A DNA stretch of 63,470 bases, filler included, from Intoshia linei (GCA_001642005.1; 8 parts of 8 records of this genome joined end to end with filler, not necessarily neighbours in it), one strand, 5' to 3'. Positions 6,677 through 27,586 are shown, numbered from the whole stretch's first letter. Translations and numbers: made by a program. The notes: generated from the letters alone by a model not told the origin.

Positions 6677-7225
6677 CAGCGTATATATTTTTTTAAATTC
6701 TCAAACTCGTTTGATTTTCAAAAAGAGGGACAACTGCGGTTTTTGACCCGTAAAATGTGAGTTTGGGAGGTTGAAATTTAGTTTGCGAACACCCCGGAAA
6801 CACTGTAATTGAAATGTGAACTTTATAAAATTATAAGACGGGTAGTTATTTAAATAAAGCTGAACACACACACACAAATAAAAATATTAGGTCGTTTCAT
6901 AAGTAATGTTTTTTCAACAAAATTACAAAGTTTATTTGATTACATTAAAAATAAAGTTATATTATAAAATATTCACCATATTAATCCATAGAATATATAT
7001 TTTTAAATTCTCCAACTCGTTTGATTTTCAAAAAAAAGGACAATTATGCTTTTTGACCCTTAAGATGTGAGTTTGGGAGGTTGAAATTTGTTTTGCTAAC
7101 ACCCCGAAAAAAACTGTAATTGAAATGTGGACTTTATAAAATTCTAAGAGTGGCAGTTATTGAAATAAACGGGAACACACTCACATGCAAACAAACAAAA
7201 ATTTCGTAGCATAATATGTAAGGAT
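6677..7225 (-). repeat. Two tandem partial copies of the DINE/Helentron-like repeat
   Basis: Two cores TTTGACCC(G/T)TAA(A/G)ATGTGAGTTTGGGAGGTTGAAATTT, CA microsatellites and a terminal GTAAGGAT. Confidence 0.8.
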
Positions 7226-7331: not shown

Positions 7332-7920
7332 ACTTTGACAAAATTGCACTGGCTTTATCTCCAATACACACAATTTTTACATTCATATTCTTATCCAACC
7401 TTTCATTAACGGCTTTAACAATAGGTTTTACAATGCTAGAATGGACAGATCCACAAAGTCCTCGATCGGAGGTAACTGCGATAATTAATTGGTTAGGATC
7501 CTCTGATTTTGATTTTACTTCACATTTATCATAAAATTCTAAATTGGATTAAAATGTAGTTTATTTTTATACCCTAATATAAATACCGTGACTCATACAT
7601 TTGGAATTTTTTTTAATTTTTTAACTAAATTTTAATTCTTAAAACATCAATTCCGATAACTAGGATTGGAAAATGTTTCATTATTGAAACATCTAACTAA
7701 CATCTCACAGGAAATTTTGAAAATAAAAATAAAATGTATTTTGTATTAAATGTATTATATAATATAATATATATTGTATAGTTGTACCTAAAGCTCCTAT
7801 CCCATAAGGTCTGACATGCTTCAATTTTCGCTCAGCTTGGGTATATTTTGCAGCTGAAACCATTTTCATAGATTTGGTAATTTTTTCAATGTTTCTGATA
7901 GCCTTCAAACGCATTGAAAC
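7332..7920 (-). CDS. ATP5F1C: Mitochondrial ATP synthase gamma subunit, two internal exons; start exon probably near 8123 but unresolved, 3' part lost in gap
   Basis: [25 protein letters not shown] and [19 protein letters not shown]...IVCIGDK. Confidence 0.93.
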
Positions 7921-8993
7921 TAATTTAATTAAATACAATTAGATGCAGTAAATCAAATTACATAAAACTTCAACATAAAAAGTGTGCTAAAATACAAAAT
8001 ATCTTTCAGTTACTGGAAATATTAAAAACAATAATAAATAATTTTTCTTAATGTCCCAAATTGGGACTTTCAATCAACGATTTTACATAATTTTAGCAAA
8101 AAACAAACATTTCGGCATAACATCCTACATGAATTTACAGAATCTTACAATATTTCATACTAGCTATTAATATTTAGTAAATATTGTATACGTTTCAAGA
8201 AATTCACTTAGATTAAATTTCCACAATGCATGGTGTTTAGTGATTCCTGATCTATGTAGTAGAATAAAGATAAACTTGTATTGTTGTGTTGGTCTTAAGT
8301 TTATACGGTAAGTCCTACAATTTTTAAAAGTTGACAAGCCCAAATTAATGATATAAGGTCATTTCATAAAATATAAAAAGATTAAGAGCAAAAATTTACT
8401 ATGTTTGAGAGTGGCCATGGATCGGCTTTGAACTAAAATGCATCTAAATTGCAATTAAATAAATACAATTGGATAGATTATACGGTACAATATTCAACAT
8501 TATATAAATTAAAGAATTTTATTTCTATATTTGATTCTTTAGTAACAAAATATTTGTACGTTTTTTATTCATTTTATTTTATTTTTATTCTAATCCTCAA
8601 TCTTAACAAACTACCAATTATTGTAACATTGAAACTTTTTGGAAACTAATACTGATACGTATTTTTGATAGGTGTCATTAAATAGTTTTTGTTTAACCCA
8701 CGTGTTTATGGAACAAGGCGTATATTATATGTAATCTGGTGGTAAATTTACTTAATTTAAAATATAAATGTCTAAGAAGAGGGATATCAAGGCAAGCACC
8801 GTATGTTTGCTTGTGATACGGCTGTAGTCTGAATGTGATCAAAGTATATATGAAAGTAAAACTAATTAGTAATTATATTAATTAGTATGTATTATGTTAA
8901 ACGTATCAACGAGCGATATTGAAATATTCAAATTAGAATAAAAATATTGCATAGATACAAAATTGTCGAAATTGTTGATCAAATATAAATACA

Positions 8994-11738
8994 ATGATGG
9001 AGAAAAAAATTAAAGACGGTGATATTGTAGTTATATTTTTTGATTACAAAAATATATACAGAAAAAATTTGGATCCTATAAGAATTGACACAAAATATGG
9101 AGCTATATTAAAAAGTGATTTAATTGGTAAAATGTACGGTTCAATAGGAAAAACAAACACCAACATAAAATATTATATACTGGAAATCACACCAGAAATT
9201 TATACACGTATTGGGCCAAATATGACACGTTATTTGTATACAAATGATATTTCGCAAATTGTGTATAATTTATCCTTGAAGCCAGGGTCCAGTGTAATTG
9301 AAACTGGAACAGGTAGTGCAAAATTATCTTTTTCAATTTTAAAGAGTATCTTGCCAACCGGAAAATTGTTTTCTTTTGATATTGACGATATGCGAATTTT
9401 ACAAGCCAAAAAAGATATGAATTTATTGATTAATGACTGCATTGATGAAAATTTTATCTGTGAAACTAAAGATTTTACTAAAGATGAATTTGAAAATTAT
9501 TCTTGTGTTGATGCACTTTTTCTTGATTTACCTTCTCCTTGGCTTGCTATGAAGAATGTTGTAAAGTTACTCAATATTGGTAATATTAAAATCTTATATT
9601 CTGGTTCTAGGTTTTTTAAGTTTAATGTATTAGTTTTGGTTAGGTTTTTGTAAGTTAGTTTGGACGGAAAGATCGAGATTCTACTACCACAAAACCTTGT
9701 GAATTATTTTATTTGGTCATTTGTTTCATGTTTTCTAGGGATTGTAATTTTAAAAATTTAACAAATTAAAAAATGTACATTTAGATGGTAGATTTGCATC
9801 TTTCTCTCCATGTATAGAACAAATTCAGAAAACTGTTTTGACAATGAAGCGAAATTTTGACCAAGTAGAGGTAATATTTATTTTTGTTGATTTATATTTT
9901 ATATTTTGACTTTGTGAAACTTGTATAACTCAAAAAGAATACTGATTTCTGTTTTTGTCTTTATTAATTATAAAAACATATCTAAAATGGTCGGTCCGAA
10001 AGACAATGGATTACTAACTTCGGGCGTGCCAAACCGTTGTTTGGACCGTGCTTCACAACTATAATAAATACACTGATGGACCAGTAGGTCGTAATCATAA
10101 CCGAACCTATACAGCACTAGGCTATCTGAAAAATAAACTCTTATAATAAAATTTTCACAAAAGAAGTGTATTGTCATTCATAATTTATAACCGCTAGCCA
10201 CTTCTCTAATGCGCTCGAGTTGACATTTTAAATTTAACACAAAAAATAGTTATGATATTCTAGAACAGGGGTGCACAACCTGCGGTCGTGAAAGCATTTA
10301 TGTGTGGCCGTGGGCAATCCATGTCATCAAAATACAATATATCATTTTACTTCAAATTCAAGCAAAATATTTTTATCAAAATGTTACATTTTTGACTTTG
10401 GCCATTTTCTCAAAATGGATTTAAACTTTCACAATGTCAAATTAAATTTTGTACGGACATAGTATCAATGAGTAAAGTAGCTTTGCTGGTGAATTGATAT
10501 AAGGTTGTGCACCCCTATTCTAGAATATAATTTGGAAAATAAGGCCCTCATTTTACAACACTTTCGTCTAGACCAGTGTTTCCCACCCTTTTAAGTTTTA
10601 TGCTCCACTTTTATCATTACAAAATTTCTACGCCCCATCATAATTTGTAACAAATATTTCCATAGTAGTGTCATAACAGATTTTTTTATGCATATATATT
10701 ACGGCGCAACAAAATGGGGTAAAACGTTAAATTAAAATTTAATTGATTAATTAATGTGATTTTTGAGTTTAGTGTTTTTTGCAAAGATTTTCTATTTGAA
10801 CCACCATTTTTGTAATCTTTAAACGCAGGACTCCTCTTTTGATTATGTCCAACTTTTTTCTTTTCTTTATCAATAGATCACTAACTGCACTGAAGCCACA
10901 TTCTTCTAAGTATGAAGAAGGAAAAGGTAACATAACTCATGTTTCTAATAAGGATAATTCTAATCATAACAAGGAATGTTTCTATCTCATCACAAAGCCA
11001 TGAAATAACTCCTTTTATGTTGAACATTGATTTCATTGACTCATCGTTTTGCATTTTTGAGATTTTTTCTTGATATTGCGTCGAGATATCACATAGATTC
11101 ACTAGCATTGGATGCATCGTTCATACTGGAAATTTAATGTTTTTTAAATCAGAAGCTAATAATTTTAAATTATCAACTATTATAAGTACATCAGCATCAG
11201 TTACCTCACACCTCTTTAACCAATAAAACAAATAAACCAGTTTTCTATGGGAAGCCGAATGAATTTGTTCGCAAAAAATATGAGAATTTATTAATGATTA
11301 GATTATCTTGATTTCTTGACAAATTTTGACAAGCCCCACTGGTGGGGCATACCCCACGTTGGAAATAACTGGTCTAGACCGTCTATACCCCACAGAAAGG
11401 ATCTCGGTACGGTAGGTTCGGGACTGGTTCTAATCACCAAAAATTTTGATTATTTTTTTTCCGTATAACTACAAAATATGCAGAGTAAAATTAAATTATT
11501 AGTAAACGTGGTAAAATATTTAATTATGATATAATTTTTTCAATAGGTCTACGAGTTTGTTAAAAACCATTATGGTTTTAGAAAATTTGATTATTCTGAA
11601 ATAATAAATAAGGACGAATATACAAATGGAAATTTGATAAAAACCGAAAAACAAAATACAATTATTAATTTCGGAGCACCTATAGGCCATACTGGATATT
11701 TGCTATTTGCTTCACTCACAAACAAATTAAATTTATAA
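8994..11738 (+). CDS. TRMT61A: tRNA (adenine58-N1)-methyltransferase catalytic subunit; exons approx. 8994-9579, 9785-9870, 11547-11738
   Basis: LKPGSSVIETGTGSA, DALFLDLPSPW, GRFASFSPCIEQIQK and C-terminal GHTGYLLFA. Confidence 0.92.
10266..10517. mobile_element. hAT MITE in TRMT61A intron
   Basis: TIR CAGGGGTGCACAACC / GGTTGTGCACCCCTA with 8-bp TSD TTCTAGAA. Confidence 0.9.
10574..11371. mobile_element. Non-autonomous hAT element, possibly with decayed transposase sequence
   Basis: TIR CAGTGTTTCCCAC / GTTGGAAATAACTG with 8-bp TSD GTCTAGAC. Confidence 0.85.
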
Positions 11739-12978: not shown

Positions 12979-15136
12979 ATGCGGCTAATGAGGAGTGGGT
13001 CAATTTGCTTCTTCTCATTAATATCTTTATGGATATTTGGATTTGTTATTATCAATAGAATCTTTTCCATCAAATATATTAACCAAATTCAATTTTCCTT
13101 TATTGGTAAATTTTAATATATTTTTTAATAAATATGTAAATACACAAATCGCACCTCATTTTATCTACCTATAAAATTAATTTATTTTTAATATATAATA
13201 TAAAATAAGTTTGTTTCCATCATTATTTCATTAATGATATACATTAATTTACAGGAACCATCCAAATATTCATAATAATTATGTTAAACCTGGATAAAAT
13301 TTTTAATTTATACGGTTGATATATGACCGGAAACACTAAATATATATTTATGTTAATATAAAATTTGAAACATTAAGATTGGTAAAAACAATATTAAAAT
13401 ATTAAATTTACACATAAATACATTTGTGCACATAGAGGTACCCTCACTTACGAAGCCCATGAAATATCCGCTCAAACTGAAGTAATTCTGTATTTTCATA
13501 AATACTACAGAATAGGGATGGAGCCAATTTTGTATATATAAAAATATTTTAAATGTAACTAAAAATCGCGAAAATTTCTTTACACTCAGTTACATTAGCA
13601 TCTAATCATTAGATTGTTAATTTAAAAGGAATAAATCAAAAAATTCTTAAAACCACTAAAGGAGGGTTACAGATATAATTTTTTATTTATTACATTTTAA
13701 ATTTACATTTAGGTTTCAATGTTTTCTACATACTAATGATTATTAGCTATCTTAGAGTGTCGTTTTCCTCTCCTGGATATTTCTACAGTATTTCATTTTT
13801 TGTTTTATTTCTTTACATTGTATATACAGATTTTACTCCATTTGAAAGAGAAAACCAACAAGCCATAGCAATACGTACATTCTGTAAGAAATGTAAACAT
13901 CTTAGACCAGCCAGGTCTCATCATTGTGCAGTTTGCAATAAATGCGTAAGGAAAATGGATCATCATTGTCCTTTGTAACATTTTTACATGCATTCTTACT
14001 TATTTTTAAAATAATTACAGTAATTGTAAGTGAATAAATATATTTTAGCATCAACAATTGTGTTGGAGAAGAAAACTTTAAATTTTTTGTTTTGTTGCTG
14101 TTATATTGCTTTTTATCTGCTCTTTTTTCAATGTACATTCATATTTCCTATTATACAGGATACTATCCTGAAGTTGAGGTATATTTTTACGTATAAATTG
14201 TGTATTTTTATTTTTAGGAGAATCCAATTTATAACCAATCAATCATAATCAAATTTACATTTTTTGTCACCATTATTTTCTTCCTTTTTGATACATGCAT
14301 ATTACTGGTTGCACATTTAAATATCCTATTAGTAAGTATTTTATACATATTATAAATTTTCTCAAATTGTGTAAAATATAAGATACAATTGTTTTGTTTT
14401 TAAATATGATCTTTTTAACTCTACAATTTCATCTGAAAAAAATATTTCTTGCAATTTTTTTAATAGTCATAAATAAAACGTACAAAATAGAATAATTTTA
14501 TTCCCTTACACTTTTAGAATATTTTAAAGGCATAGTGAAATCGTTGAGGAAAACTGTGTTTTCTAATTTTAGACCCAGATACATGCATTATAATGATAAT
14601 TATAATGGAAATACATAACATTTTTTTATATTATTATTCTATAACTTCTTCATTTATATAGAATAGAACAACTTTAGAATGGTATGATATTAGAAAAGAA
14701 GAGCAAAGTGGAAAGATATTTATCAATTACCTTAGGTTAGCCGTCTTATCAAACATTAAAATTAATTTTTATTTTACGTTAACGTTAAATAATTTGAAGT
14801 TTCCATATACCGTATCTAATCATATTTTCATCACTTTTGAATGTAATTTGAACCATATTTAAAACAAATAATTGGATATTAGTACGAAATTTTTTTTCAT
14901 GATAAAATGTAATTTTCTACACTGTACTAAATAACCGTATGATGGAAAACCCTATTTACATTGTATCGAAAATGATAATTATTATAAAATTACAATTAAT
15001 ATTTAGAAATGCAAGATCACAAGATTATCCAAACAATTTACGTGTTATATGTGAATCAGATAACTTGTGTTTATCACTGTGGCCTCTGAGACAACAAATT
15101 TTGTTTAGGGAAACTGAAAATTTGTTACCTTTGTAA
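12979..15136 (+). CDS. DHHC-type palmitoyltransferase (multi-exon, boundaries approximate)
   Basis: [31 protein letters not shown] / INNCVGEEN, hydrophobic TM exons and an NRTTLE motif exon near 14662. Confidence 0.9.
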
Positions 15137-15663
15137 AAAAATATAAATAAACTTTTCCAAGTCTACAATAGAATTGAATTACAATATACATTATACAGTA
15201 CAATTTTTCCTTAAAAAATTTTTTAAAATAATGCATCAAATAATATGGTATGAATTAGAATTTACATTTTGATACATTGATGATATTGGTGTATTTTAAA
15301 AAAATGGTTGTATTGGTGTTTGGATATTTTTCGAGACCATTCATTCTAAAACCTCAATGTTTCTCCAGAAATGTAAAAATTTACAATTTTAATTGATGAG
15401 ACTAATATACAATTATATCAATAACTTACATTGACGATGAAGGTGATTCACACTTGGTGATACATAATCTTAATTTTTGCGAAACTTTTTATTTTGATGA
15501 CCACTAATATGCAGGCCATGGTATTGGAAGACTGGTATCATCCTACATTACATTTACGTTGTTGGTATTGGTAATTCAAATATTTGAATAGATAAATAAA
15601 AAAGGTCGCTCTCATACATCATAAATACATTTCTCAACTTTTAAATTTACAATTAGAATCAAA

Positions 15664-18600
15664 ATGAAATCAGTTACATTTTTCAGTGGATTATTATTTG
15701 TTTTTATACAATTGATATCATACAATTACATTGAAGCTAAAAGTAAAACATTTCATACATTTTTTTTTATAAATTTTATTTTAGCTGGTAAATTTAAAAT
15801 TAACTAATTATGAAATATATTTATTTAAATTGTTTACAGATATATTCATTTTTTTACTCAAATTACTCTATTCCATTAATTTAAAATTTTACCATGATCA
15901 ATGATCGTACGTGAAACTATTTGTTGTGTAAATGAGGATTTTGCAAAATTTTTCGTGATGGGTCAAACTAACATTATTCAAACTCTCATCCTTACTTATA
16001 TAATATGCTACGCAATATTTTTGTGTGTGTGTGTGTTCCACTTTAGTAATTTATAAATGTTTCATTTTAATATTCAGTAATTGTTTATAGTCTAAATCAG
16101 TGGTTCCCAAAGTGGGCAATTAATTCAGTTAGGGGGCGTTTTGAAAAATAATGCATTAATGAGAAACAAATTTTTGGATTAATTTTTTTTATTAAATCCT
16201 CAAATCCCCATTCATTATAGATCAATTTCAAAAGTCAGGGTCTTACAAATTTAATGAATCGCGTATAAACTTTAAAATTTAAAAAAAAAAATTTTAATTT
16301 TTTATAAAATTGATTAATCTTATTTTCACTGCTAATTAGTTCTATTAACTAAATTCACAACAGTAGCCAAATACAAATATAATAAAAATTCTTGTGAACA
16401 AGATATTGTATTTAAAATATCATAATTGTTAGAAAAACCACCAAGAAACCCTCTATTTTATAAATTCTGTTTTTTATGAATTTTTGGGTAAAATAGGGTT
16501 ATATTGAGAAGGATTTCTGATAAACTGTTATAACCATGGCATTATATATACTCAAAAATTTTACATATACTATTTATACGCATGAATTCACAACGTTACC
16601 ACACCAATATTGTTTTATAAAGTTCATGTTAGTTTTTGCAAAATTGTATTAAAAATTAGTTAAAAATGCAAAAAGTCAATATTTTTTTTGAGAGTTAGAC
16701 AATTTCAAGCACCTCATCTTGTTCACAATAACAAGTTTCATTTTTCCCCGTTGGATACTTTTGCATTGTATAAAAAAAGTGTTTTAGGACACACCTTAAT
16801 ATATATAGAACATGTAACATGTATTAAATTTATATTAGTTAATTATCATTATTAATTATTATAGTGTGTAATTAATATTTATTCATCACAATATGGTGTT
16901 ACAGTGTCCAGTTTCATTATCACGAATTAAAAATTTATGAAAAGTTTCTAAAAACCTTATTATTCACCTTAATACACCATTTTCAAAAGTGAAACTATTT
17001 TAATTTAAAGTATATGCTATATAACAGTGATGGCAAATATATGACACGCCCAGGGATTCTGCTTAACACGTTGGTAAAAAGATAATTTGAAATTTTTAAT
17101 ATGATGTGGAAAAATTAACTCAAAAGTGTGCAATAATAGAAAAGTGTACATACCTAAAATTATTTATTATTTAAAAGTGACACCCAACAAAAAAGAAAAT
17201 AACAAAAAAAATTTTTTTGACTCAACAACTGAAAAGTCTTGTCATCACTGCTATATAACATCAAATTTCAATCGATTTTGAAATTGATGCAATTTTTTAT
17301 GCATTTATAACAGGGTCAGCAACCAGTGGCTCACAGAATAATTTTGGTAACCCTTTGATTAAGCATTTAAATTATTTATTTTTAAATTTTTCAACGTTTA
17401 AACACCGATTTAAACATTTTTATAATATAATTATAATTGGCTCATTATACATTGTATAAATATTTTGTTAAATATACTAGAACAATTTCTCTTCTGTTAA
17501 AATTGAATTGTATAATGTGTAAATTTTCTAAAGCGGGGCTCGTAGAATTTTTTGATATATAAAAGTGGCACACGAAATGCAAAACGTTGCCGACCCCTAA
17601 TGTATAATATATTTATTTTGAACCATATTAATATAAAGCTTGTAAATTTTAATTTTTTAAGAATGTACAAATTTTTTTTTAAATGTATTTGAATATCTAT
17701 TATTTAAAATATTATTTTAGTGAGTATAATTATAATTATTTTATATACCGTGTTAAAATTTTAATTAATTTTATTTTAATTATACTTATATATTTAATTT
17801 ATAATTAGTTCCCCGTAATAATCATACCATTATATAATAAATATAATGTATTAATATTATTGATGATATACATTAAAATACATGTCTATAAGAATAATTT
17901 TATAGTTGTTCTTATGGATAGAGTCGAACATTAGTTTAGTGCATAATGAAAATGTAAGTAACATTAAAAAATTTAGTAAACTATGGAAACATTGAAAAGT
18001 GTTTTTATAGAAAGTGTTCTCATAGACAGAGTTTACTGTATTACATTTAAGTGTAAGCATTACTTTGTTAAAAATAATATATTATTTTAGCTGGTAAGTA
18101 TTATTGGTATAATTAATTTTGAAAATTGTACTTTAATTCAATAAAAATTATTTACTTTTTTTATGTTTTGTGAATAATATCATATTCCTTTGATAGCAAG
18201 TAAAAATATAATATATAAATCGTTATAAACTTAAAATTAAAATATATACAACATATACAGTCAAATCTCTCAATAGCGCCATTTCGGTTTTTTGATATGT
18301 GTTTATTAATGGGGGTATTCGGTGTAACGAATAGATCACGAATACGGTTACTATGTATTAATAAGCATATATATAATAAAATAATGATAAAATGAAGTTC
18401 ATTCATCCAACACGCGTTTTTTAATGTATTTGTTTGTAAATTTAATTAAAATTTGATAAAATATAATTAAAATTAGATTAATAATTTCTATATTAACTGT
18501 TTATATTAATATATTTATGATTTTAAATTAAAAATTTACTCATTTTAATTAAATTTTTTTTAAACTATTTTAAAATTGAAGCGATATTGAGAAATTTTCT

Positions 18601-21600
18601 TATATGTTTATTATAAAATTTAAATATAGTGGCGGTATTGAGAGGTCTGACTGTAATTAAAAATAATGTATATATTAATTTTTTCTAAATAATATATTTC
18701 AATGTAACCCTTAAACTCTATATCAGTGGTAGCGAAAATAGTATTTGCGTGTTGAAACATTATTTGATTAAACTGTTTTTAACTCACATCAAATAAAAAA
18801 TGATTTTATTTTAAACTATGAAATTAGAATTTAAGTAAACATACATAATCATTTGAATATATTCAGATTAAAATTTTATTTAACTTTAAAAAATAATAGA
18901 TTTTTTAATAATGCTACGTTTCGTAAAAAGTTCGACAGAGGTTATTACTAATACATTATTTAGGTAATTATATATAATGTAATATATGTAGTATAATGTT
19001 TTGATTGATAAAACATTAAATATTTTATAATATTAATACACTATATCACAGCATTATGTAAATATTATATTTATTAAATAATTAAGCCTAAAAATGTGGC
19101 AGATCGATCCTATGGTGTATATCTTAAAAAAATTCAACTCTACATACATAATCTAATAAATTAATGATAATTATCATTATTAATATAAAAATGATATTAT
19201 ATTATATAAAAACTTACAAAACTTTATTTTTTTATTTTGCATTGATATTTATTTATCATATTATTTACATGTTAGTTATATATTTTTTATAATAAATAAA
19301 TTGCAAATTTATTACAATTATTTTTTTTATTTGTGTTTAGTCGGTAATTTTAAAATTTTTATTAACAACGTTTAAAAATCATACCTGTGAACTGTGTTCA
19401 CCGAACACGAATCTTGCCAAATTTTAATTCAAAAAAATATAATATATTTTATAATTACAAAATTCAGAATCATAATAAATAATTTAATTATTTTTAGATA
19501 GTAATTAGTTTTTTTTAATTCTTTCAAAAATGTTTTCAAAAATTTAATTCACTTTCATAGAATGTAATGAAAATAGTCAAATTTAACTTTATATTACAGA
19601 GTGTTCAATGAACTTCAGTGTTCAGTGTTCATTTTATGACTATACCTTTGATAAAATTAGTAAACTTAAGTAATAATCATTACCAATAACTACTTAATAA
19701 ATTTTAAAATAAAAATAAATAAAAATTATCGAATTTACGGACTAAATTAAGAACCGCACATTTAGTAGGAAGCCTATCAATTCCAAATTTATTTATAAAA
19801 TTTTCGCGTACAATTATATTAAATTTTCCATATTTAATCATCTCTTGAACTAGGAATAATCTTTCATCTATCAAAATTATAATATCAATCAAATTTAGTT
19901 TCAGAAAGTTTACATACAGATTGTTTTGAACTTTATTATGACTATAATTTTTCTATATGAATATGCACTGAAAGTATAGCTTTAAAATAAATACCCTGTA
20001 GTAATAACATTGTACTACAAATGTATACATTCAAATTAATATCTATAAAACGGTAGTACGTAAATCAAAAAAAATAAAATATCAATTATTTTATTATATA
20101 AATTTAAATTTATTAATGTATAAATCATTTTTAATTAGCTCGTAAAACATTAAAAACGTGCATTATAAAGAAATATAATTATTAATTAATGAAACAGAAT
20201 ACTTTATCAATTTTTTATATTTTATTAACTAATTATTTTATCAGAAATATACCATTAATTAAGTATTACCAAATATGCTGCAAGTTAGAAATTTTATGAT
20301 AAAATTTTAAATAAAATTAAAAAAATATTACCTGTATATTAAATTAGAAATATTGCGCCAAAAATTTGTTGAGTTAATAACATGAATTGATAATTACAAT
20401 TCAATAATACAAAGTGCAACAAAAAGTTCCAAATGTTTTAATTGATATCTAATTAATAGACAAGATCCATATAAATATTTGAAATGTAAATTAAATTCAC
20501 TTTACAAATCCATATTAATAAAAAAAATTTATTAAAAAAGTGAATAAAGAATATAATGATAAATTTTGATTTTGATTTGACATTTATGGCGCAAATTTAC
20601 AACAGGCAATATGTTATCTTTTTTAATGTGACAAATTTTTATTTTCAATCAATTTTTTACATCAACAATTAATTGTACGGATTATGGTAATTATTTTTTT
20701 CTGAGTGATTTTAATAATTATATCAATAAATTAAACAAATTAATTTGATTAAATAGTCATTAATTGTGTCTTGAATTTCTAATATTACTTAATTTTTCTT
20801 AAATTGACTTTTACAAAATTGTAATAATATAGTGTTTAGATCCAATTATATAATTATACACATTATATTCAGTTTGTAATTTATTATTACTTTATCATTA
20901 TCAATCAGAGGTAGCAATCCATTCATCTTTTTTAATAGTCTTAGAAAATATACAGGGGATAAGAAAATGATATATTTTTATGTGGTTGGCTAAAATCTGA
21001 GGAAATTTTAATTTATTTATATATTTACAATTGATTAATAAATTTATATTAAAATAAAAACAGATCGTTAGTTTTATATTTATCATTTATATTTATCAAT
21101 TATATATTTTTCTCAATAATGATTAAATTCATTAGCCGATAAAAATTATTTCATTATATTTATAGAGTGTAATATTTTTATGATTCTTGAAATCCAAATT
21201 TTTTAAATTTAAATAATATGCGTTGATTTTAATTAATATAAAAATTTTGTTAATAAAAATAATTATTAAATTCAGTCGGTAATTATAGTTTATATACAAT
21301 TTATATCTGTAACATGTACTTAGTTTCAATTTTTATATAATTATACACTATTAAATTAATAGCACGTAAATAATAATTATTGTAATAAAAAACATTTAAA
21401 AAAAAATGTATTAATATATTTATATCATTGTTATTACCTTTATAATTAACATCATTAGGAGGTAAATTATAGAAACAAGCAATGATCTCTAAAAATGAAA
21501 TATATTTAAATATTTAAATCATAATATCTATACTTTCATTAGCATGTAAATTATATATAAAAATTAAATTAAATCGATTAAATTTAATTTCAATGTTTTA

Positions 21601-24600
21601 TATTACAGCTTGTATATTTATTATTTATTAATGAGACTATTTATAATAATTTTTTTTTGATTTCATAAATATTTTATTATGCTGCATAGATTGTAAATTT
21701 ACAATACATTTAATTGACTAATTGATACTATTAATTTATTGTTTTTAGATGGTTTGGAAAATTTTATATGATAAAGTGAAAAATTTTTGAATTTTTATTA
21801 TTTTCAGTTTGTAATTTTTTAAGTAGTTACAAATCACTAAATTATATTCGAAATTGTTAATTTTATAAAAAATCTATACTTATTATATACTTGATATATT
21901 TTCATAGATAGTAATTATAAAATAACGTGATAAGTGTATTTAAATTATATATATATATTTTTGATTATAGACGGCAATTTTGCTAAACTTTTTAGAATTT
22001 TGTTAAAATAACTTTGAAGTTATAATTTTTATTAAATTTTAAATTAAAATAACATTTAGATGGTAATAGAAAATTAATTTATTATAAACCCATTTTAACA
22101 TACGACAATTTATTTTTCGATTAATTTAAACTTATATGTTTTCAGTAAAAATTTCAAATTTATTCATATAATATTCAAACTAATTTTATAGAATGTAAGA
22201 TTTATAATTTTATTAATTTTTGTTCATATAAAAAAATGCTTATTATTTTTTTTAATTTCAGCAAAAAGTAAATTTTTAAGAATTTAAATATCTTTTTGAA
22301 TGATGGTATCATCCCATCAATTGCATTAATTCGGTTTGAACACTTTTCTATGCATGGGCACATCACAAATTTTTAATTTAAGATACAAAATGATTTAATT
22401 AAGTGTAAATCAGGAGTAAAAGAAAATTATGGATAAAATAAATATAAATTAATCATAGGATGTAAATGTTTTTATCAATACATTATCATGTATGTCGATT
22501 TGATGGGTTGTAAAAATGATATTTATTTTCAACTAATTATGTTAGATTGTAAATTTTATATTACATTTGTATTGTTTTTAGTATTATTAAAATCAATATA
22601 TATTTTAAATGGGATTTTGTTCACCATTCTTAAAAATAATAATAACAAAGAAAAGATTTAAAATGTTCGGAAAGAGGGATCTAGAATAAAAAATATATGT
22701 TGTAAATGTGCATGTTTTTTTTGGCTAAAATATTATTGTTTATTTTAATTTTCTAACATGTTTAGTAAGTAATACTATAATGCCAAAAACAAAAAGTTTA
22801 TTATACATTTATATATAATATTTATTATTACAAATATTTAACAATTATTATTATGCATTATATGTATATTTGGTTTAATATTAATTATATTAATCTAAAT
22901 ATTAATTTTTTGAATTCTGATTTTATTAATCAAATATTCTCAAAAATTAAGTATTCCAATAATTTTAGTGAGTAAAATATTATAATAATAATAATATGTA
23001 TATTAGGCTGTGCAATTAAAATTATTTTGATAATTTTCGAGGACGATTAGTTCACAATCTGTTCATTTATGTAATATTTAGATTAGTTCGAAATAAAAAT
23101 ATTTAAAAATAGTCTACCCACTCGAATCGGCATTTTTGTTAAGATCCCATTGTAGATTATGTTATTTTACAGAAAAATACACCAGATGTGCACTAATCGA
23201 CCTTGATTCTTGAATAAGTGTGAACCCTAATGATTTGAGCCTAATGTACAATGTACATATAAATATTTGAAAAAATTTTGTAATTTTATTGAATTTTTAA
23301 TACAATTGTAAATGTGAAAATGTATAGCAAGTAATTTTTTTCTAATATGAACAATACCATTTTGATATTTGTGTATGTATAATATACATTCTATATTTAT
23401 GACGACAACGGTATTGCTGATGCTATTATATGATTATTACCAATCCATATTATTTCGAATGTCTGAATTGCTTCAGCTATACTTGGTGTGTCTTAATTAG
23501 TTTATACAGGGGTCCCAAATTCACCTTATCAACTGCTATATATAGATTTTATAAAAATTACTAAGTGATTACTGAGTTCTCGGTTTTAGTATTTTTGACT
23601 TTATTTATTTTATTTTGACCGAGTTCTTATATTTTTTTATTGATTTTAAAATTCATCTCTTCCTTTCATAAATAATTTTGATAATCATTAATATAGCATT
23701 TTTTATGGGCGTTGAACTTCAAAGTTTGAATTATGATATTTTTGATACATTATTACCTAACAGGTTCTTATTTTGGGCCATCCCCAATCGTAGTACATAC
23801 TTTTTACTGAAGCTATAATAGGTGTGAAATTGTGTGTTCAATTTTTGTAAAAAGTAATGAGTTTTAAAACTCAATACTTTTTAGAATAAACATATTTTAA
23901 AAATTATTAATTTTGTTAATCAGATTGGTTTTTCAATCAAAGCATTAAAAAATTGCATTAAATAAATAATTAAATTATCAATACTTTCAACTAGTACATC
24001 AGATGAAATATTATTTTCTGCGACGGGGTTATCCACGTCTATTGGTAAAACTAGGATTACGCCAGAAATAATTGAAACTGATTTTTAAAATACAATAAAA
24101 ACTTGATGTCCACAAAAACTAATTTATAAACAATTTTTTGTTAATAACAAATTTAACTATCTACTACTTTATACTAGTTTATATATGATACTACTTTCTT
24201 ATAAATTTCGGATATTATTATCCTCTAAATATCAGTTATTTATTTATTGTATATAATTTATTTTTTATTGCCATCGAAAATCAGCAAGATTAATTGTATG
24301 TTTTGAATTTTTTACGTTTTGTGAACCAAAATTGAAAACTCATCAAATTGTTTTTAAGTATTTTTATTAAATTTTGAAAAAACGTACTTACTGAGTTTTT
24401 AAAAAAAAAATTGTTTTACTGAGTTTTACTATACTGGATTTTTATTTTGTAAAAAAAAGTACTTAGTGCTTACTGATTTCCTAAAAAACTAAGTTGAACA
24501 CACTAGTACAAAATATCAATAAATGATGATAGCTAATGTACTCGTCAATGGTGTAAATAAATATATAATTAATAATTATGTATTTATTTAATTATAATTA

Positions 24601-27586
24601 AATCACAAATATTAAATATTAAAAATGAATAAATACTTTTAAAGAATGTAAATTAATTGATATATCATCTATTTTATATATATTATATACATTACATACA
24701 TCTGGATAGGGCTGAATCTACACTTTCTCAATCATTTACCCATTACTAATTCAGGTATTTTCAATATTGATTTTGGGAAAATTGTTTAAAATTATTAAAA
24801 TTATTAAAAAGTAATTAATCGTAAAACCTTACATTAAATTTCACATTATGTACATGTTTTTTGCCAAAATAATGTAATCATAAAATAAAATCGTAAAATC
24901 GATTCATACGGTAAATTAAATTTTTCATTTTAATAATTTAAGATAAATCACATTTTTTTATTTTATGTGTTAGACTAGTGACCGCCAAAATATATGATCG
25001 GCAGAAACCAGTTACGATTCTTTGTTAAAAGTACCTTTATCTGATTAATTTTGATTAAACGTTAAAAATACGAATGTTGTGACATTTCAAAAATATTTTT
25101 TATTAATACTGATTCAATAATCATATTTGGAACAATAGAAAATTGTTATTACGCAATTAATTCTGACATAATACAAAGAAATTTTTAATTTTTAAATGGT
25201 GACATAGCACTAAAAAAAAACATATATATAATTTCATGAGACTATGAAAATCGCAGAACAACGACTATATGTACTATATACATTATATATTTGTATACAA
25301 GGACATGTCATGATAGTATGCTCGAAATTTTTTTATTACATACCCATACATTTATTACACCGCTAGTAAATACTTTGGTGAAACACTGACCACTTCTGTA
25401 TCATGCACTTCTCATTAATTTGTATATAACTTGTATACGTAACTTGTGTTTTATTAATTTTGATGTTATCACAAAATTTTCAATATTCTGAATGGTAAAA
25501 TTAATATTAGATGGTAATTTAAATTTAATGTTATTTTTACTTTTTTATATGTGAAATTTCTGTATAGTTGGTATGTTCATTGACATTGTTTTAATAATAA
25601 TTGTTAAAACTCATAACGTATAAGATTATATTCTTTCAATAAGAAAATACATATGGCCCATTCTCTACACTAAATATCAAAATAGCAAAAATTAAAATGA
25701 TAAATTAGATTTATTTTTTTGGTTTAATGTTGAGCATAAATCTTATATTTTACAATAATTATAAAATATCTGCCAAAAAAATTATATTTAAACACTATTT
25801 ATAGACGCTTACATATATGTTAGATAAAAATTTGTTTTTACAAAATATTAAGTATAAATATCAATCGACATATCTAGTTTTGTATAGAATAAAAATAAAC
25901 CAATTTCGATTTGTTACGTTGATAAAATCAAAAAAATTTTGGTAGCGCCAAAACTTTCAATTATAGTTATTTTAAAATAAATATTTACACATTCTCAATA
26001 AAACTCTAAAGTTTTAATGTGATGTCAGATAGTTACATATGCATCTTATTTGAAAAGAAATTTAAAAATAAGCATCATTAAGATGTCATTCTAAGACTTT
26101 TAAATACTGTAACGCCAATAAGTTTAAATTAAATTAATTAAATGAATCAATCAATTGATATAGATATGACCAATACAACTGAACATTGTTCCAATTGCGC
26201 GAAAAAGACAAAGAATAACGATGAATTCAAGAAAAATAATAGAGAAAGTAGCGTTATCGGGTGTATAACTCATAAAAATGAAGTTATAAATACATTTGGT
26301 AACGAGATAATGATATTAAGTACTAGCAGTAACTTCAATAGTGTACTACTAGAAACTTATATATCAAACATTATATTTCATGTAAAAAATGAATTAACAT
26401 AATATATTTATTCCAGAGTGAAGTGAGTTTAACATTAGTTACTCTAAAGTTACTATATCGTTACTGAGAAAGGAAAAAAAATTATAGAAGGAGGTATATA
26501 AAACACAATATACAAAAACACATCTTTTTGCTTTGTGTACCGACAATGGAGATAAAGGGGAAAATGCTGTTAGAACATATTTAAATCAAATTTTTGATAT
26601 GTATAAAATAAAAAACAAAACTGTAATCGTATGGTCTGATGGACCATACGGTGAATTTAAAAATAAATATCTTGTACAGACATTAAAAATTTTGGAAATT
26701 AAATATTTGTGCAAGATTCATTGGAGATTTTTTGCAACAAGCCATGGAAAAAGTGTTGTTGATGGGATTGGGGGGCGAGTGAAGCATATGGTGCAAAAAT
26801 CAGTAATGTCCAAAAGACATGATGCCCCTATTGTCAATAATGCAATAACATTTGTTAGTACGGCTCAGAGGTTATGTCAAAACACCTTCATTAAAAAATG
26901 TCGTGGAGTTAAAAAGTACAAATGGAACAAAACAAAATTTGCTGGCATTGGAAAATGCCATAATATTGAAATAGATAAAAATCTTCTAATACTAAGAGAA
27001 CACACTAGAGACCATCCTTTTATTACATATCTAATATTATAAATTATAAATAAATGTTTAATTTAAAATGTATTGAAATTCTATATTCATTTTAAAAAGT
27101 TTATATATGTAAAGCCAAAGTTTATAATTTAATTTTAATTTTTACACTATTATAACCAATACCCATGGTTTAATTATTGGTAGTATCTGTCGACTTTATT
27201 CCTACTAAACTATTAAATGAATTAATGGTCTTCATTTATTTATAGATTCACAAGAATCTTCGATAAACTAAAAATGAACATTAAAAAGTGTTTTTTGTGA
27301 ATTTCGAATGAATCACATTCTATGTTAAAATTTAAATATTGTAATTCGTTTCTCTCCAAACTAATGCTAATTAAAATATTTTTAATTTTTTTGTGGTCAA
27401 TTTAAAGCTATTTCTAAACAATATATTATATTATTTTGTCATCTATATCTATTTATCTGTAAATTTAACCATTTTGGCGTTACAAGCATGGGCCATATAT
27501 ATACATATATGTATGTATTTATAAATGTAATCAATTCAGTGGGTATATTTATTTATAATTAACTGTACTATCAATATTAGGCAAAA
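15664..27586 (+). CDS. Putative secreted protein encoded by a micro-exon gene: signal-peptide exon 15664-15742 plus about 40 micro-exons of 3 nt (four of 6 nt); 3' end runs into the gap
   Basis: Exon 1 is MKSVTFFSGLLFVFIQLISYNYIEAK+A|gtaa. It is followed by repeated AT-rich tract + YAG|NNN|GT(A) units, and phase-1 joining is stop-free. See findings. Confidence 0.78.
17025..17250. mobile_element. hAT MITE
   Basis: TIR CAGTGATGGCAA / TTGTCATCACTG with TSD CTATATAA. Confidence 0.9.
17311..17599. mobile_element. hAT MITE, same family as 34192-34427 and 59172-59469
   Basis: Ends CAGGGTCAGCAAC / GTTGCCGACCCCT and internal similarity (AAAAGTGGC.CAC) to the other copies. Confidence 0.8.
18258..18653. 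mobile_element. Tc1/mariner-type MITE
   Basis: TIR CAGTCAAATCTCTCAATAGCGCCA / TGGCGGTATTGAGAGGTCTGACTG with TA flanks. Confidence 0.88.
19597..19998 (-). mobile_element. Mariner-like remnant with N-terminal HTH fragment
   Basis: TA-CAGAGTGT...ACCCTG-TA ends. ORF 19704-19892 (ERLFLVQEMIK...FINKFGIDRLPTKCAVLNLVRKF) resembles mariner-type transposase N-termini. Confidence 0.65.
25655..27494 (+). mobile_element. Decayed DNA transposon with transposase fragment 26533-27042 (possibly Sola-type)
   Basis: GGCCCAT...ATGGGCC termini flanked by ATAT on both sides. Motifs WSDGPYGEFKNK and WRFFATSHGKSVVDGIGG. Confidence 0.8.

Follow-up and report, generated by a model that had tools for sequence, protein, structure and literature searches.

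The minute orthonectid Intoshia linei parasitises nemerteans. We analysed a stretch of DNA of 63,470 nucleotides (nt) from this organism (GCA_001642005.1), made up of 8 parts of 8 records joined end to end with filler and referred to below as the window; coordinates are those of the window, and features lie on the plus strand, unless stated otherwise. Positions 21061-22270, in the part of the window that represents contig C1017, are occupied by a dense array of very short units, all but one 3 nt long, each placed between a splice acceptor motif and a splice donor motif, and similar units continue on both sides of this core. We interpret the array as the likely core of a protein-coding gene in which nearly every internal exon would be a 3-nt micro-exon.

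Candidate micro-exons in the core array

The original prediction counted fourteen 3-nt units and one 6-nt unit between 21061 and 22270, and our recount agrees exactly. From 5' to 3', these candidate micro-exons are ATC (21064-21066), AGT (21166-21168), TCG (21276-21278), CAC (21363-21365), GAG (21459-21461), CAT (21543-21545), CTT (21609-21611), ATT (21690-21692), ATG (21749-21751), TTT (21808-21810), ATA (21908-21910), ACG (21971-21973), ATG (22060-22062), AAT (22192-22194) and the 6-nt unit CAAAAA (22262-22267). In all 15, TAG or CAG stands immediately upstream and GT, or in a single case GC, immediately downstream. Eleven of the 3-nt units fit YAG-NNN-GTA, the number reported earlier; the other three comprise two with GTT donors, namely the first (gttagt) and the ninth (gtttgg, a weak donor), and the twelfth, with the GC donor gcaatt. 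The spacers measure 56-129 nt, as had been claimed, and the described concentration of G residues in the motifs is real, with 37 of the 97 core G residues located within splice dinucleotides or units.

Occurrences of YAG-Nk-GT and YAG-Nk-GTA with k = 0-12 were counted on both strands and compared with dinucleotide-preserving shuffles. In the core, YAG-N3-GT occurs 13 times on the plus strand and not once on the minus strand, against a shuffle mean of 0.65 and a maximum of 4, and YAG-N3-GTA occurs 11 times against 0.31 in shuffles; a rough hand estimate had given ~0.4 chance matches per 1.2 kb. The peak anticipated at k = 3 on the plus strand only was recovered, whereas the accompanying peak anticipated at k = 6 is absent from the core, where none of the other spacings from k = 0 to 12 exceeds the shuffles.

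The array was also proposed not to be satellite DNA, and this holds: there is no tandem repeat at the unit period, and adjacent spacers resemble each other no more than randomly paired ones, for which reason we rejected a tandem-repeat origin still visible in the spacers. Tandem Repeats Finder returned only short AT-rich microsatellites in the array region and nothing with the unit period, and the core contains no direct repeats besides the junction motif itself. Neither of the outcomes that had been named as speaking against an array, a missing k = 3 peak or spacers that are copies of a repeat unit, was encountered.

Splice signals and spacers

The consensus derived from 327 units is T(82%)/C-A-G before the unit and G-T-A(89%)-A(76%) after it, with little else conserved. 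TRMT61A, a gene on the same contig, has two ordinary introns, both of the form GTAATA...TAG. Spacer lengths have a mode of 60-90 nt and a floor of ~41-45 nt and fall mostly between 55 and 130 nt, and the median intron length of I. linei is 57 bp (PMC6543705). The G+C content of the spacers is 15.5%, and YTRAY motifs are most frequent 15-20 nt upstream of the acceptor. Overall, when compared with ordinary I. linei introns, as the original prediction had proposed, the arrays match them in both splice signals and spacer sizes.

A limited family of arrays in the genome

The I. linei assembly comprises 41.6 Mb in 3,520 contigs. Two patterns of three successive units were found at 52 and 64 places genome-wide, against 21 and 14 for reversed-pattern controls, and the matches are spread over some 40-50 contigs. 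For family statistics, we used 16 further stretches beyond the window, with ~20 arrays and 108 kb or 178 kb of loci depending on the test. A one-strand bias is present in all 16 further stretches; for example, 20 kb of contig C1697 have 85 matches on one strand, against 6 on the opposite strand. Within the 108 kb of array loci, YAG-Nk-GTA was counted 324 times for k = 3 (33 on the opposite strand), 59 times for k = 6 and 42 times for k = 9, whereas k = 4, 5, 7 and 8 gave 25-28 matches, the background level. The enrichment is thus confined to multiples of three, with 3 dominant and 6 and 9 mild, and ~85% of the units are 3 nt long. Genome-wide, TAG-N3-GTAA (5,982 occurrences) barely exceeds TAG-N4-GTAA (5,784), whereas in the 178 kb of loci it occurs 273 times on the array strand and 10 times on the opposite one. 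This combination of a tiny excess in the genome and a strong excess in the loci points to a limited family of some dozens of arrays rather than to a genome-wide property.

In a search for paralogy between arrays, blastn among the loci recovered nothing beyond dispersed repeats and a pair of recent tandem duplications, and the open reading frames (ORFs) that flank different arrays show neither mutual similarity nor a Pfam domain. One duplication lies in the array of locus L031 (7912-8358; G000:C1593), with a period of 218 nt and 99.6% identity, and the other in that of locus L024 (2829-3137; G000:C2340:12829-13137), with a period of 155 nt and 94.8% identity. Both copy a micro-exon together with an intron, which is a possible route of array growth; the older spacers retain no trace of such an origin.

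Stop avoidance points to a probable coding frame

If the units are joined in order, a codon could be formed from the last base of unit i and the first two bases of unit i+1. The two parts of such a junction codon lie 60-100 nt apart in the DNA, so that no local sequence constraint can link them. Adjacent pairs in this proposed frame yield 6 stops in 290 junction codons, against 19.4 expected from the marginals (Fisher p=8.6e-6), whereas pairs two, three and four units apart yield 11, 4 and 3 stops against 11.3, 6.4 and 3.4 expected. Since avoidance is lacking in non-adjacent pairs, it cannot be caused by differences in composition from one array to another. In the other straddling frame, the depletion is not significant (12 stops against 17.2 expected). 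A frame in which each unit forms one codon was rejected, stops occurring there at about the chance rate (6-8%).

When restricted to 26 clean runs (176 units), the proposed frame has 1 stop in 175 codons, against a shuffled expectation of 8.3, and none of 2000 shuffles was as low; the lone stop stems from a doubtful 6/9-nt call. Stops number 15/201 and 16/175 in the other frames of the same runs, and four small held-out loci show the same frame behaviour. The base composition of unit positions 1-3 fits that of codon positions 2, 3 and 1, respectively, of real I. linei coding sequence, and junction codon usage is better than shuffled for adjacent units in the proposed frame only (z=2.2). Codons lying wholly inside units of 6-15 nt were few. 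Among the predicted residues, A, V, I, L, F and Y are abundant, whereas C, N, S and D are scarce.

This dependence of stop avoidance on both frame and adjacency indicates that the genomic order of the units is kept when they are joined and that a single frame is used for translation. All arrays appear to share that frame, in which the introns would be phase 1 and the units would begin at codon position 2. Junctions that would arise from skipping of units are unprotected from stops, which favours constitutive inclusion over exon skipping of the kind seen in schistosome micro-exon genes. In the window, the core reads YQFARASYYVYNDESK in this frame, as originally predicted, if the T that closes the unit at 20873-20875 is counted as the start; omission of the first core unit would create a TAG stop. 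The proposal that 3-nt micro-exons follow one another, with short introns between them, and encode this peptide is supported by the strand-specific k = 3 peak, the lack of repeat structure, the match to ordinary introns and this stop avoidance, with splicing itself being what we infer from the sequence.

Full array and candidate gene model

The array extends well beyond the core. Units with strong sites, ~35 in all, span 17721-23330, with four long spacers of 0.7-0.85 kb each; G+C content is 15-19% across 17.5-23 kb, and over 17.5-23.5 kb YAG-N3-GT occurs 32 times on the plus strand and 3 times on the minus strand, against 3.7 in shuffles. Upstream of the core, the candidate micro-exons are TGA (17721-17723; tag/TGA/gtataa, a stop only if the unit were one codon), the 6-nt TTCCCC (17809-17814), CTG (18091-18093; gtaagt donor), CAA (18197-18199), the 6-nt CATTAT (19052-19057), TCG (19341-19343), ATA (19498-19500), AAT (19561-19563), a probable 9-nt unit TAAACTTAA (19661-19669), proposed from the frame, which its use keeps open, TAC (20057-20059), CTC (20139-20141) and TTT (20873-20875), whose last T would begin the TAT codon (Y) of the core peptide. 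Downstream of the core follow GAT (22459-22461), ATT (22546-22548), TAA (22766-22768), which is open in the coding frame (T/TA A/TG), TGA (22969-22971) and CAA (23328-23330), the final unit of the dense array. Two more units, ATG (25511-25513) and TTG (25568-25570), are separated by 54 nt and could be part of either this gene or the one that follows.

Our gene model for the window uses the 9-nt unit at 19661 and leaves out the weak candidates at 19600 and 19905 because either of these would create stops. In the supported frame, the strong units between 17721 and 23330 then read IPPATLFDK(LNL)IPLYQFARASYYVYNDESKRYLMT.

A candidate first coding exon, ATG..MKSVTFFSGLLFVFIQLISYNYIEAK plus 1 base, is located at 15664-15742 and ends in a phase-1 GTAAAA donor; 42 nt downstream of it lies a strong 3-nt unit, CTG (15785-15787; tag/CTG/gtaaat). 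The exon looks like a signal peptide exon followed by a phase-1 intron, and would be joined to the array that begins 2 kb downstream. Automatic searches for first exons proved too noisy in AT-rich sequence, and a stricter signal-peptide heuristic was used instead. By this heuristic, signal-peptide-like first exons followed by a micro-exon on the array strand number 7 in phase 1 and 1-2 in each control class, a modest excess. Candidates picked out in this way are the window exon 15664-15742 and exons at loci L028, L029 and L035. The last of these offers a compact example: at L035 4657-5100 (oriented coordinates on the reverse complement of G000:C261:20001-30000), an exon ATG..MANVCFFLWLIFLIYSKA plus 1 base with the donor gtaata is followed by the units TAG, AAT, TAG, GAA and TAA, which in the supported frame read LELGI; 3/5 of these units would be stops if each were read as a codon.

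Neighbouring genes and repeats

An ORF at 8994-9650 is 100% identical to I. linei A3Q56_04852, a TRMT61A homologue. The gene extends over 8994-11735 in three exons with introns of ~205 and 1,673 nt, the first of which is a phase-1 intron with a GTAATA donor. Closer to the array, upstream of it and on its strand, lies a DHHC palmitoyltransferase gene (PF01529 match at 13736-13975) that may continue downstream to ~15575, and an exon-like piece at 15515-15573 (cag/GCCATGG...TATTG/gtaatt) stands just before the candidate signal-peptide exon. On the minus strand, the exon at 7705-7938 encodes what we take to be, from a motif recognised by eye, the N-terminal region of the ATP synthase gamma subunit. 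No Pfam family was matched by the long ORFs at window 26142-27042 (+; 86+184 codons), L024 6264-8489 (+; 742 codons) and L022 8885-9997 (-; 371 codons); two of these three sites lie downstream of arrays, on the array strand.

Dispersed repeats of ~200-700 bp, with 80-90% identity, occur in both orientations on many contigs. A repeat of ~300 bp with the ends AACAGG...GTTGCCGACCCCT occupies window 17300-17600, in a long array spacer, and a second copy is found at L029 3660-3965, within an array intron of another contig; the presence of this family in long array spacers leaves the frame across them unbroken. Further dispersed-repeat copies lie at window 6683-6874 and 6993-7185 and in L021, L022, L024-L026 and L033. 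Just upstream of the array in L029 (2520-2700; G000:C970), there is a short tandem repeat with a period of ~35-40 nt, GGTTGGTAAAAGTGGATTTTTC...

Interpretation and alternatives

The motif statistics, the restriction of unit lengths to multiples of three, the stop avoidance specific to frame and adjacency, and the match to the splice signals of I. linei are direct observations. Taking them together, we consider it likely that the array is the core of a protein-coding micro-exon gene, a small stand-alone gene whose 3-nt exons are spliced and translated. As to the manner in which this would happen, we lean towards the view that dozens of consecutive 3-nt exons are constitutively spliced, with one phase-1 intron per codon, and that the product is translated. 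Nearly all internal exons would be single 3-nt units, with a few of 6 or 9 nt, separated by short spliceosomal introns of the form GTAA...TAG, each of which would split a codon after its first base, and the units would be joined in genomic order. The short introns could be recognised across the intron (intron definition), in which case exon length would carry little weight. A 3-nt exon is too short to be occupied by two spliceosomes at once, which implies sequential removal of the introns, most simply one by one from 5' to 3' during transcription, so that with every splice the upstream exon would grow longer, and only then would the next donor come into use. The signal-peptide-like phase-1 first exons, here and at a few other arrays, suggest that the products are small secreted proteins, which may be used by the parasite inside its nemertean host.

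Several points weigh against this interpretation. Consecutive 3-nt exons pose a steric problem for the spliceosome, and no precedent for such numbers of them was found in the literature. Neither a start exon nor a terminal exon could be established for the array gene, and ambiguous units interrupt several of the automatic gene models. The candidate first exon (a 47-amino-acid ORF, 15664-15804) has no relative among 1.84 billion proteins, and may instead be part of the DHHC gene next to it or of a small gene of its own. Furthermore, two frames are open within the window alone, so that it is the statistics of the whole family that decide between them.

The failure to establish a start or stop exon would fit a rival view, in which the spliced units lie inside or at the end of a larger gene of conventional type and encode a linker or a tail. 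The DHHC gene upstream and the ORFs at 26142-27042 downstream, both on the array strand, would suit such an arrangement, as would the 742-codon ORF that lies downstream of the arrays on the same strand of contig C2340. However, contig C1697 carries ~85 units in 15 kb with no linkable same-strand ORF of at least 60 codons, the ORFs flanking the arrays have neither likeness to one another nor recognisable domains, and at 15664-15787 a signal-peptide-like phase-1 exon directly precedes a micro-exon; we therefore regard a larger gene as unlikely. It is more improbable still that the splice sites are real and the product is not translated, either as a long non-coding or untranslated-region transcript or as an intron removed stepwise, in the manner of recursive splicing, that leaves 3-nt remnants. 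The juxtaposed acceptors and donors do resemble recursive splice (ratchet) points, and the region is very AT-rich and lacks a long ORF. Yet the enrichment is confined to multiples of three, and the geometry of a true ratchet point, an acceptor abutting a donor (k = 0), is not enriched, with 0 cases in the core and 33 against 30 across loci. Moreover, a non-coding RNA would have no reason to avoid stops in one frame and between adjacent units only.

Doing away with splicing altogether, one could regard YAG-NNN-GTA as a chance outcome of base composition, the remains of a decayed tandem repeat, the ends of transposons with 3-bp target duplications, or a binding site, and the extreme AT-richness and low complexity of the region, together with the two very recent tandem duplications in the L031 and L024 arrays, lend this idea some appeal. 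It is nevertheless very improbable, given a twentyfold excess over dinucleotide shuffles that is limited to one strand, the absence of any repeat at the unit period or of direct repeats other than the junction motifs, adjacent spacers as dissimilar as random pairs, and a motif identical to the ordinary splice signals of I. linei; the correlation of units across spacers of 60-100 nt is explicable only by joining. Finally, the introns themselves could be the product, with the array being a cluster of mirtron-like or structured intronic RNAs and the 3-nt exons mere spacers between them. Although spacer lengths of 56-130 nt are within the size range of mirtrons, 213 spacers were not more stably folded than shuffled sequences (mean z = +0.10; mean -7 kcal/mol for 82 nt), no spacer matched an Rfam family, and the stop avoidance would be left unexplained, which makes this explanation scarcely credible.

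Relation to known micro-exon systems

The micro-exon genes (MEGs) of Schistosoma consist of symmetric micro-exons of 6-81 bp, mostly 15 bp, with 10-20 per gene and introns of 100-5000 bp; they start with a conventional signal-peptide exon, form families, encode small secreted products without known domains, and are missed by automatic annotation (PMC10526429). Like MEGs, the Intoshia arrays belong to a parasitic spiralian and would represent coding regions composed mostly of very short exons with lengths in multiples of three. Unlike in MEGs, however, ~85% of the units are 3 nt long, an array contains 35 or more of them, and most introns measure 55-130 nt. In MEGs, the alternative skipping of exons plays a central part, whereas the skip junctions of Intoshia show no selection against stops.

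A second comparison is with bicycle genes, which have ~17 exons on average, nearly all starting at codon position 2, encode a signal peptide and occur in clusters of paralogues; they are effectors of a parasite-like organism, have long introns and paired CYC motifs, and are known only in aphids, phylloxerids and scale insects, with one aphid gene, megacycle, containing more than 100 micro-exons (PMC9168663; bioRxiv 10.1101/2020.10.28.359562). The Intoshia arrays share with them the many micro-exons, almost all internal ones beginning at codon position 2, but differ in that the exons are 3 nt long, the introns are short, and the organism is an orthonectid. No CYC motif is present in any run translation, and cysteine accounts for 0.4% of junction codons. 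The likeness to bicycle genes is one of convergent architecture, not of membership. What the arrays would have in common with both systems is a parasite, symmetric phase-1 micro-exons, orphan products and perhaps a signal peptide. With exon and intron sizes, the CYC motif and the taxon all differing from the features that define MEGs or bicycle genes, the Intoshia arrays are an extreme variant of such systems rather than a member of either.

Isolated 3-nt micro-exons are known, for example, in cytohesin-1, RPS24 and MAP4K5, and the spliceosome can include them (PMC6314551, PMC12207440, PMC8632122). Unlike the arrays, these are single, usually alternative, and located between normal exons and long introns. 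Our literature search found no described run of 3-nt exons and no report linking Intoshia to micro-exons, although a remark in the two Current Biology papers on Intoshia genomes is possible. The ratchet points of Drosophila represent zero-length exons (AG/GT) that belong to very long introns and contribute no sequence to the mRNA. The arrays resemble them in having adjoining acceptors and donors repeated on one strand, which implies stepwise removal, but differ in their spacing of exactly 3 nt and in remnants that are under coding constraint.

Implications

Micro-exons are normally rare, isolated and dependent on special help for splicing, and deposition of the exon-junction complex needs ~20 nt of exon. 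A family of genes with an intron inside nearly every codon would probe how far splice-site recognition, the ordering of intron removal and the deposition of exon-junction complexes can be pushed. If our interpretation is correct, the arrays would have the densest intron packing known in any gene, the spliceosome under intron definition would have no practical lower limit on exon size, and genes could be extended codon by codon. Genes of this kind would probably escape standard gene finders and RNA-seq aligners, and similar ones may hide in other AT-rich genomes with short introns. After MEGs and bicycle genes, the Intoshia arrays would be the third independent case of small orphan proteins of parasites being encoded in phase-1 micro-exons, which hints at a general evolutionary reason for this architecture.

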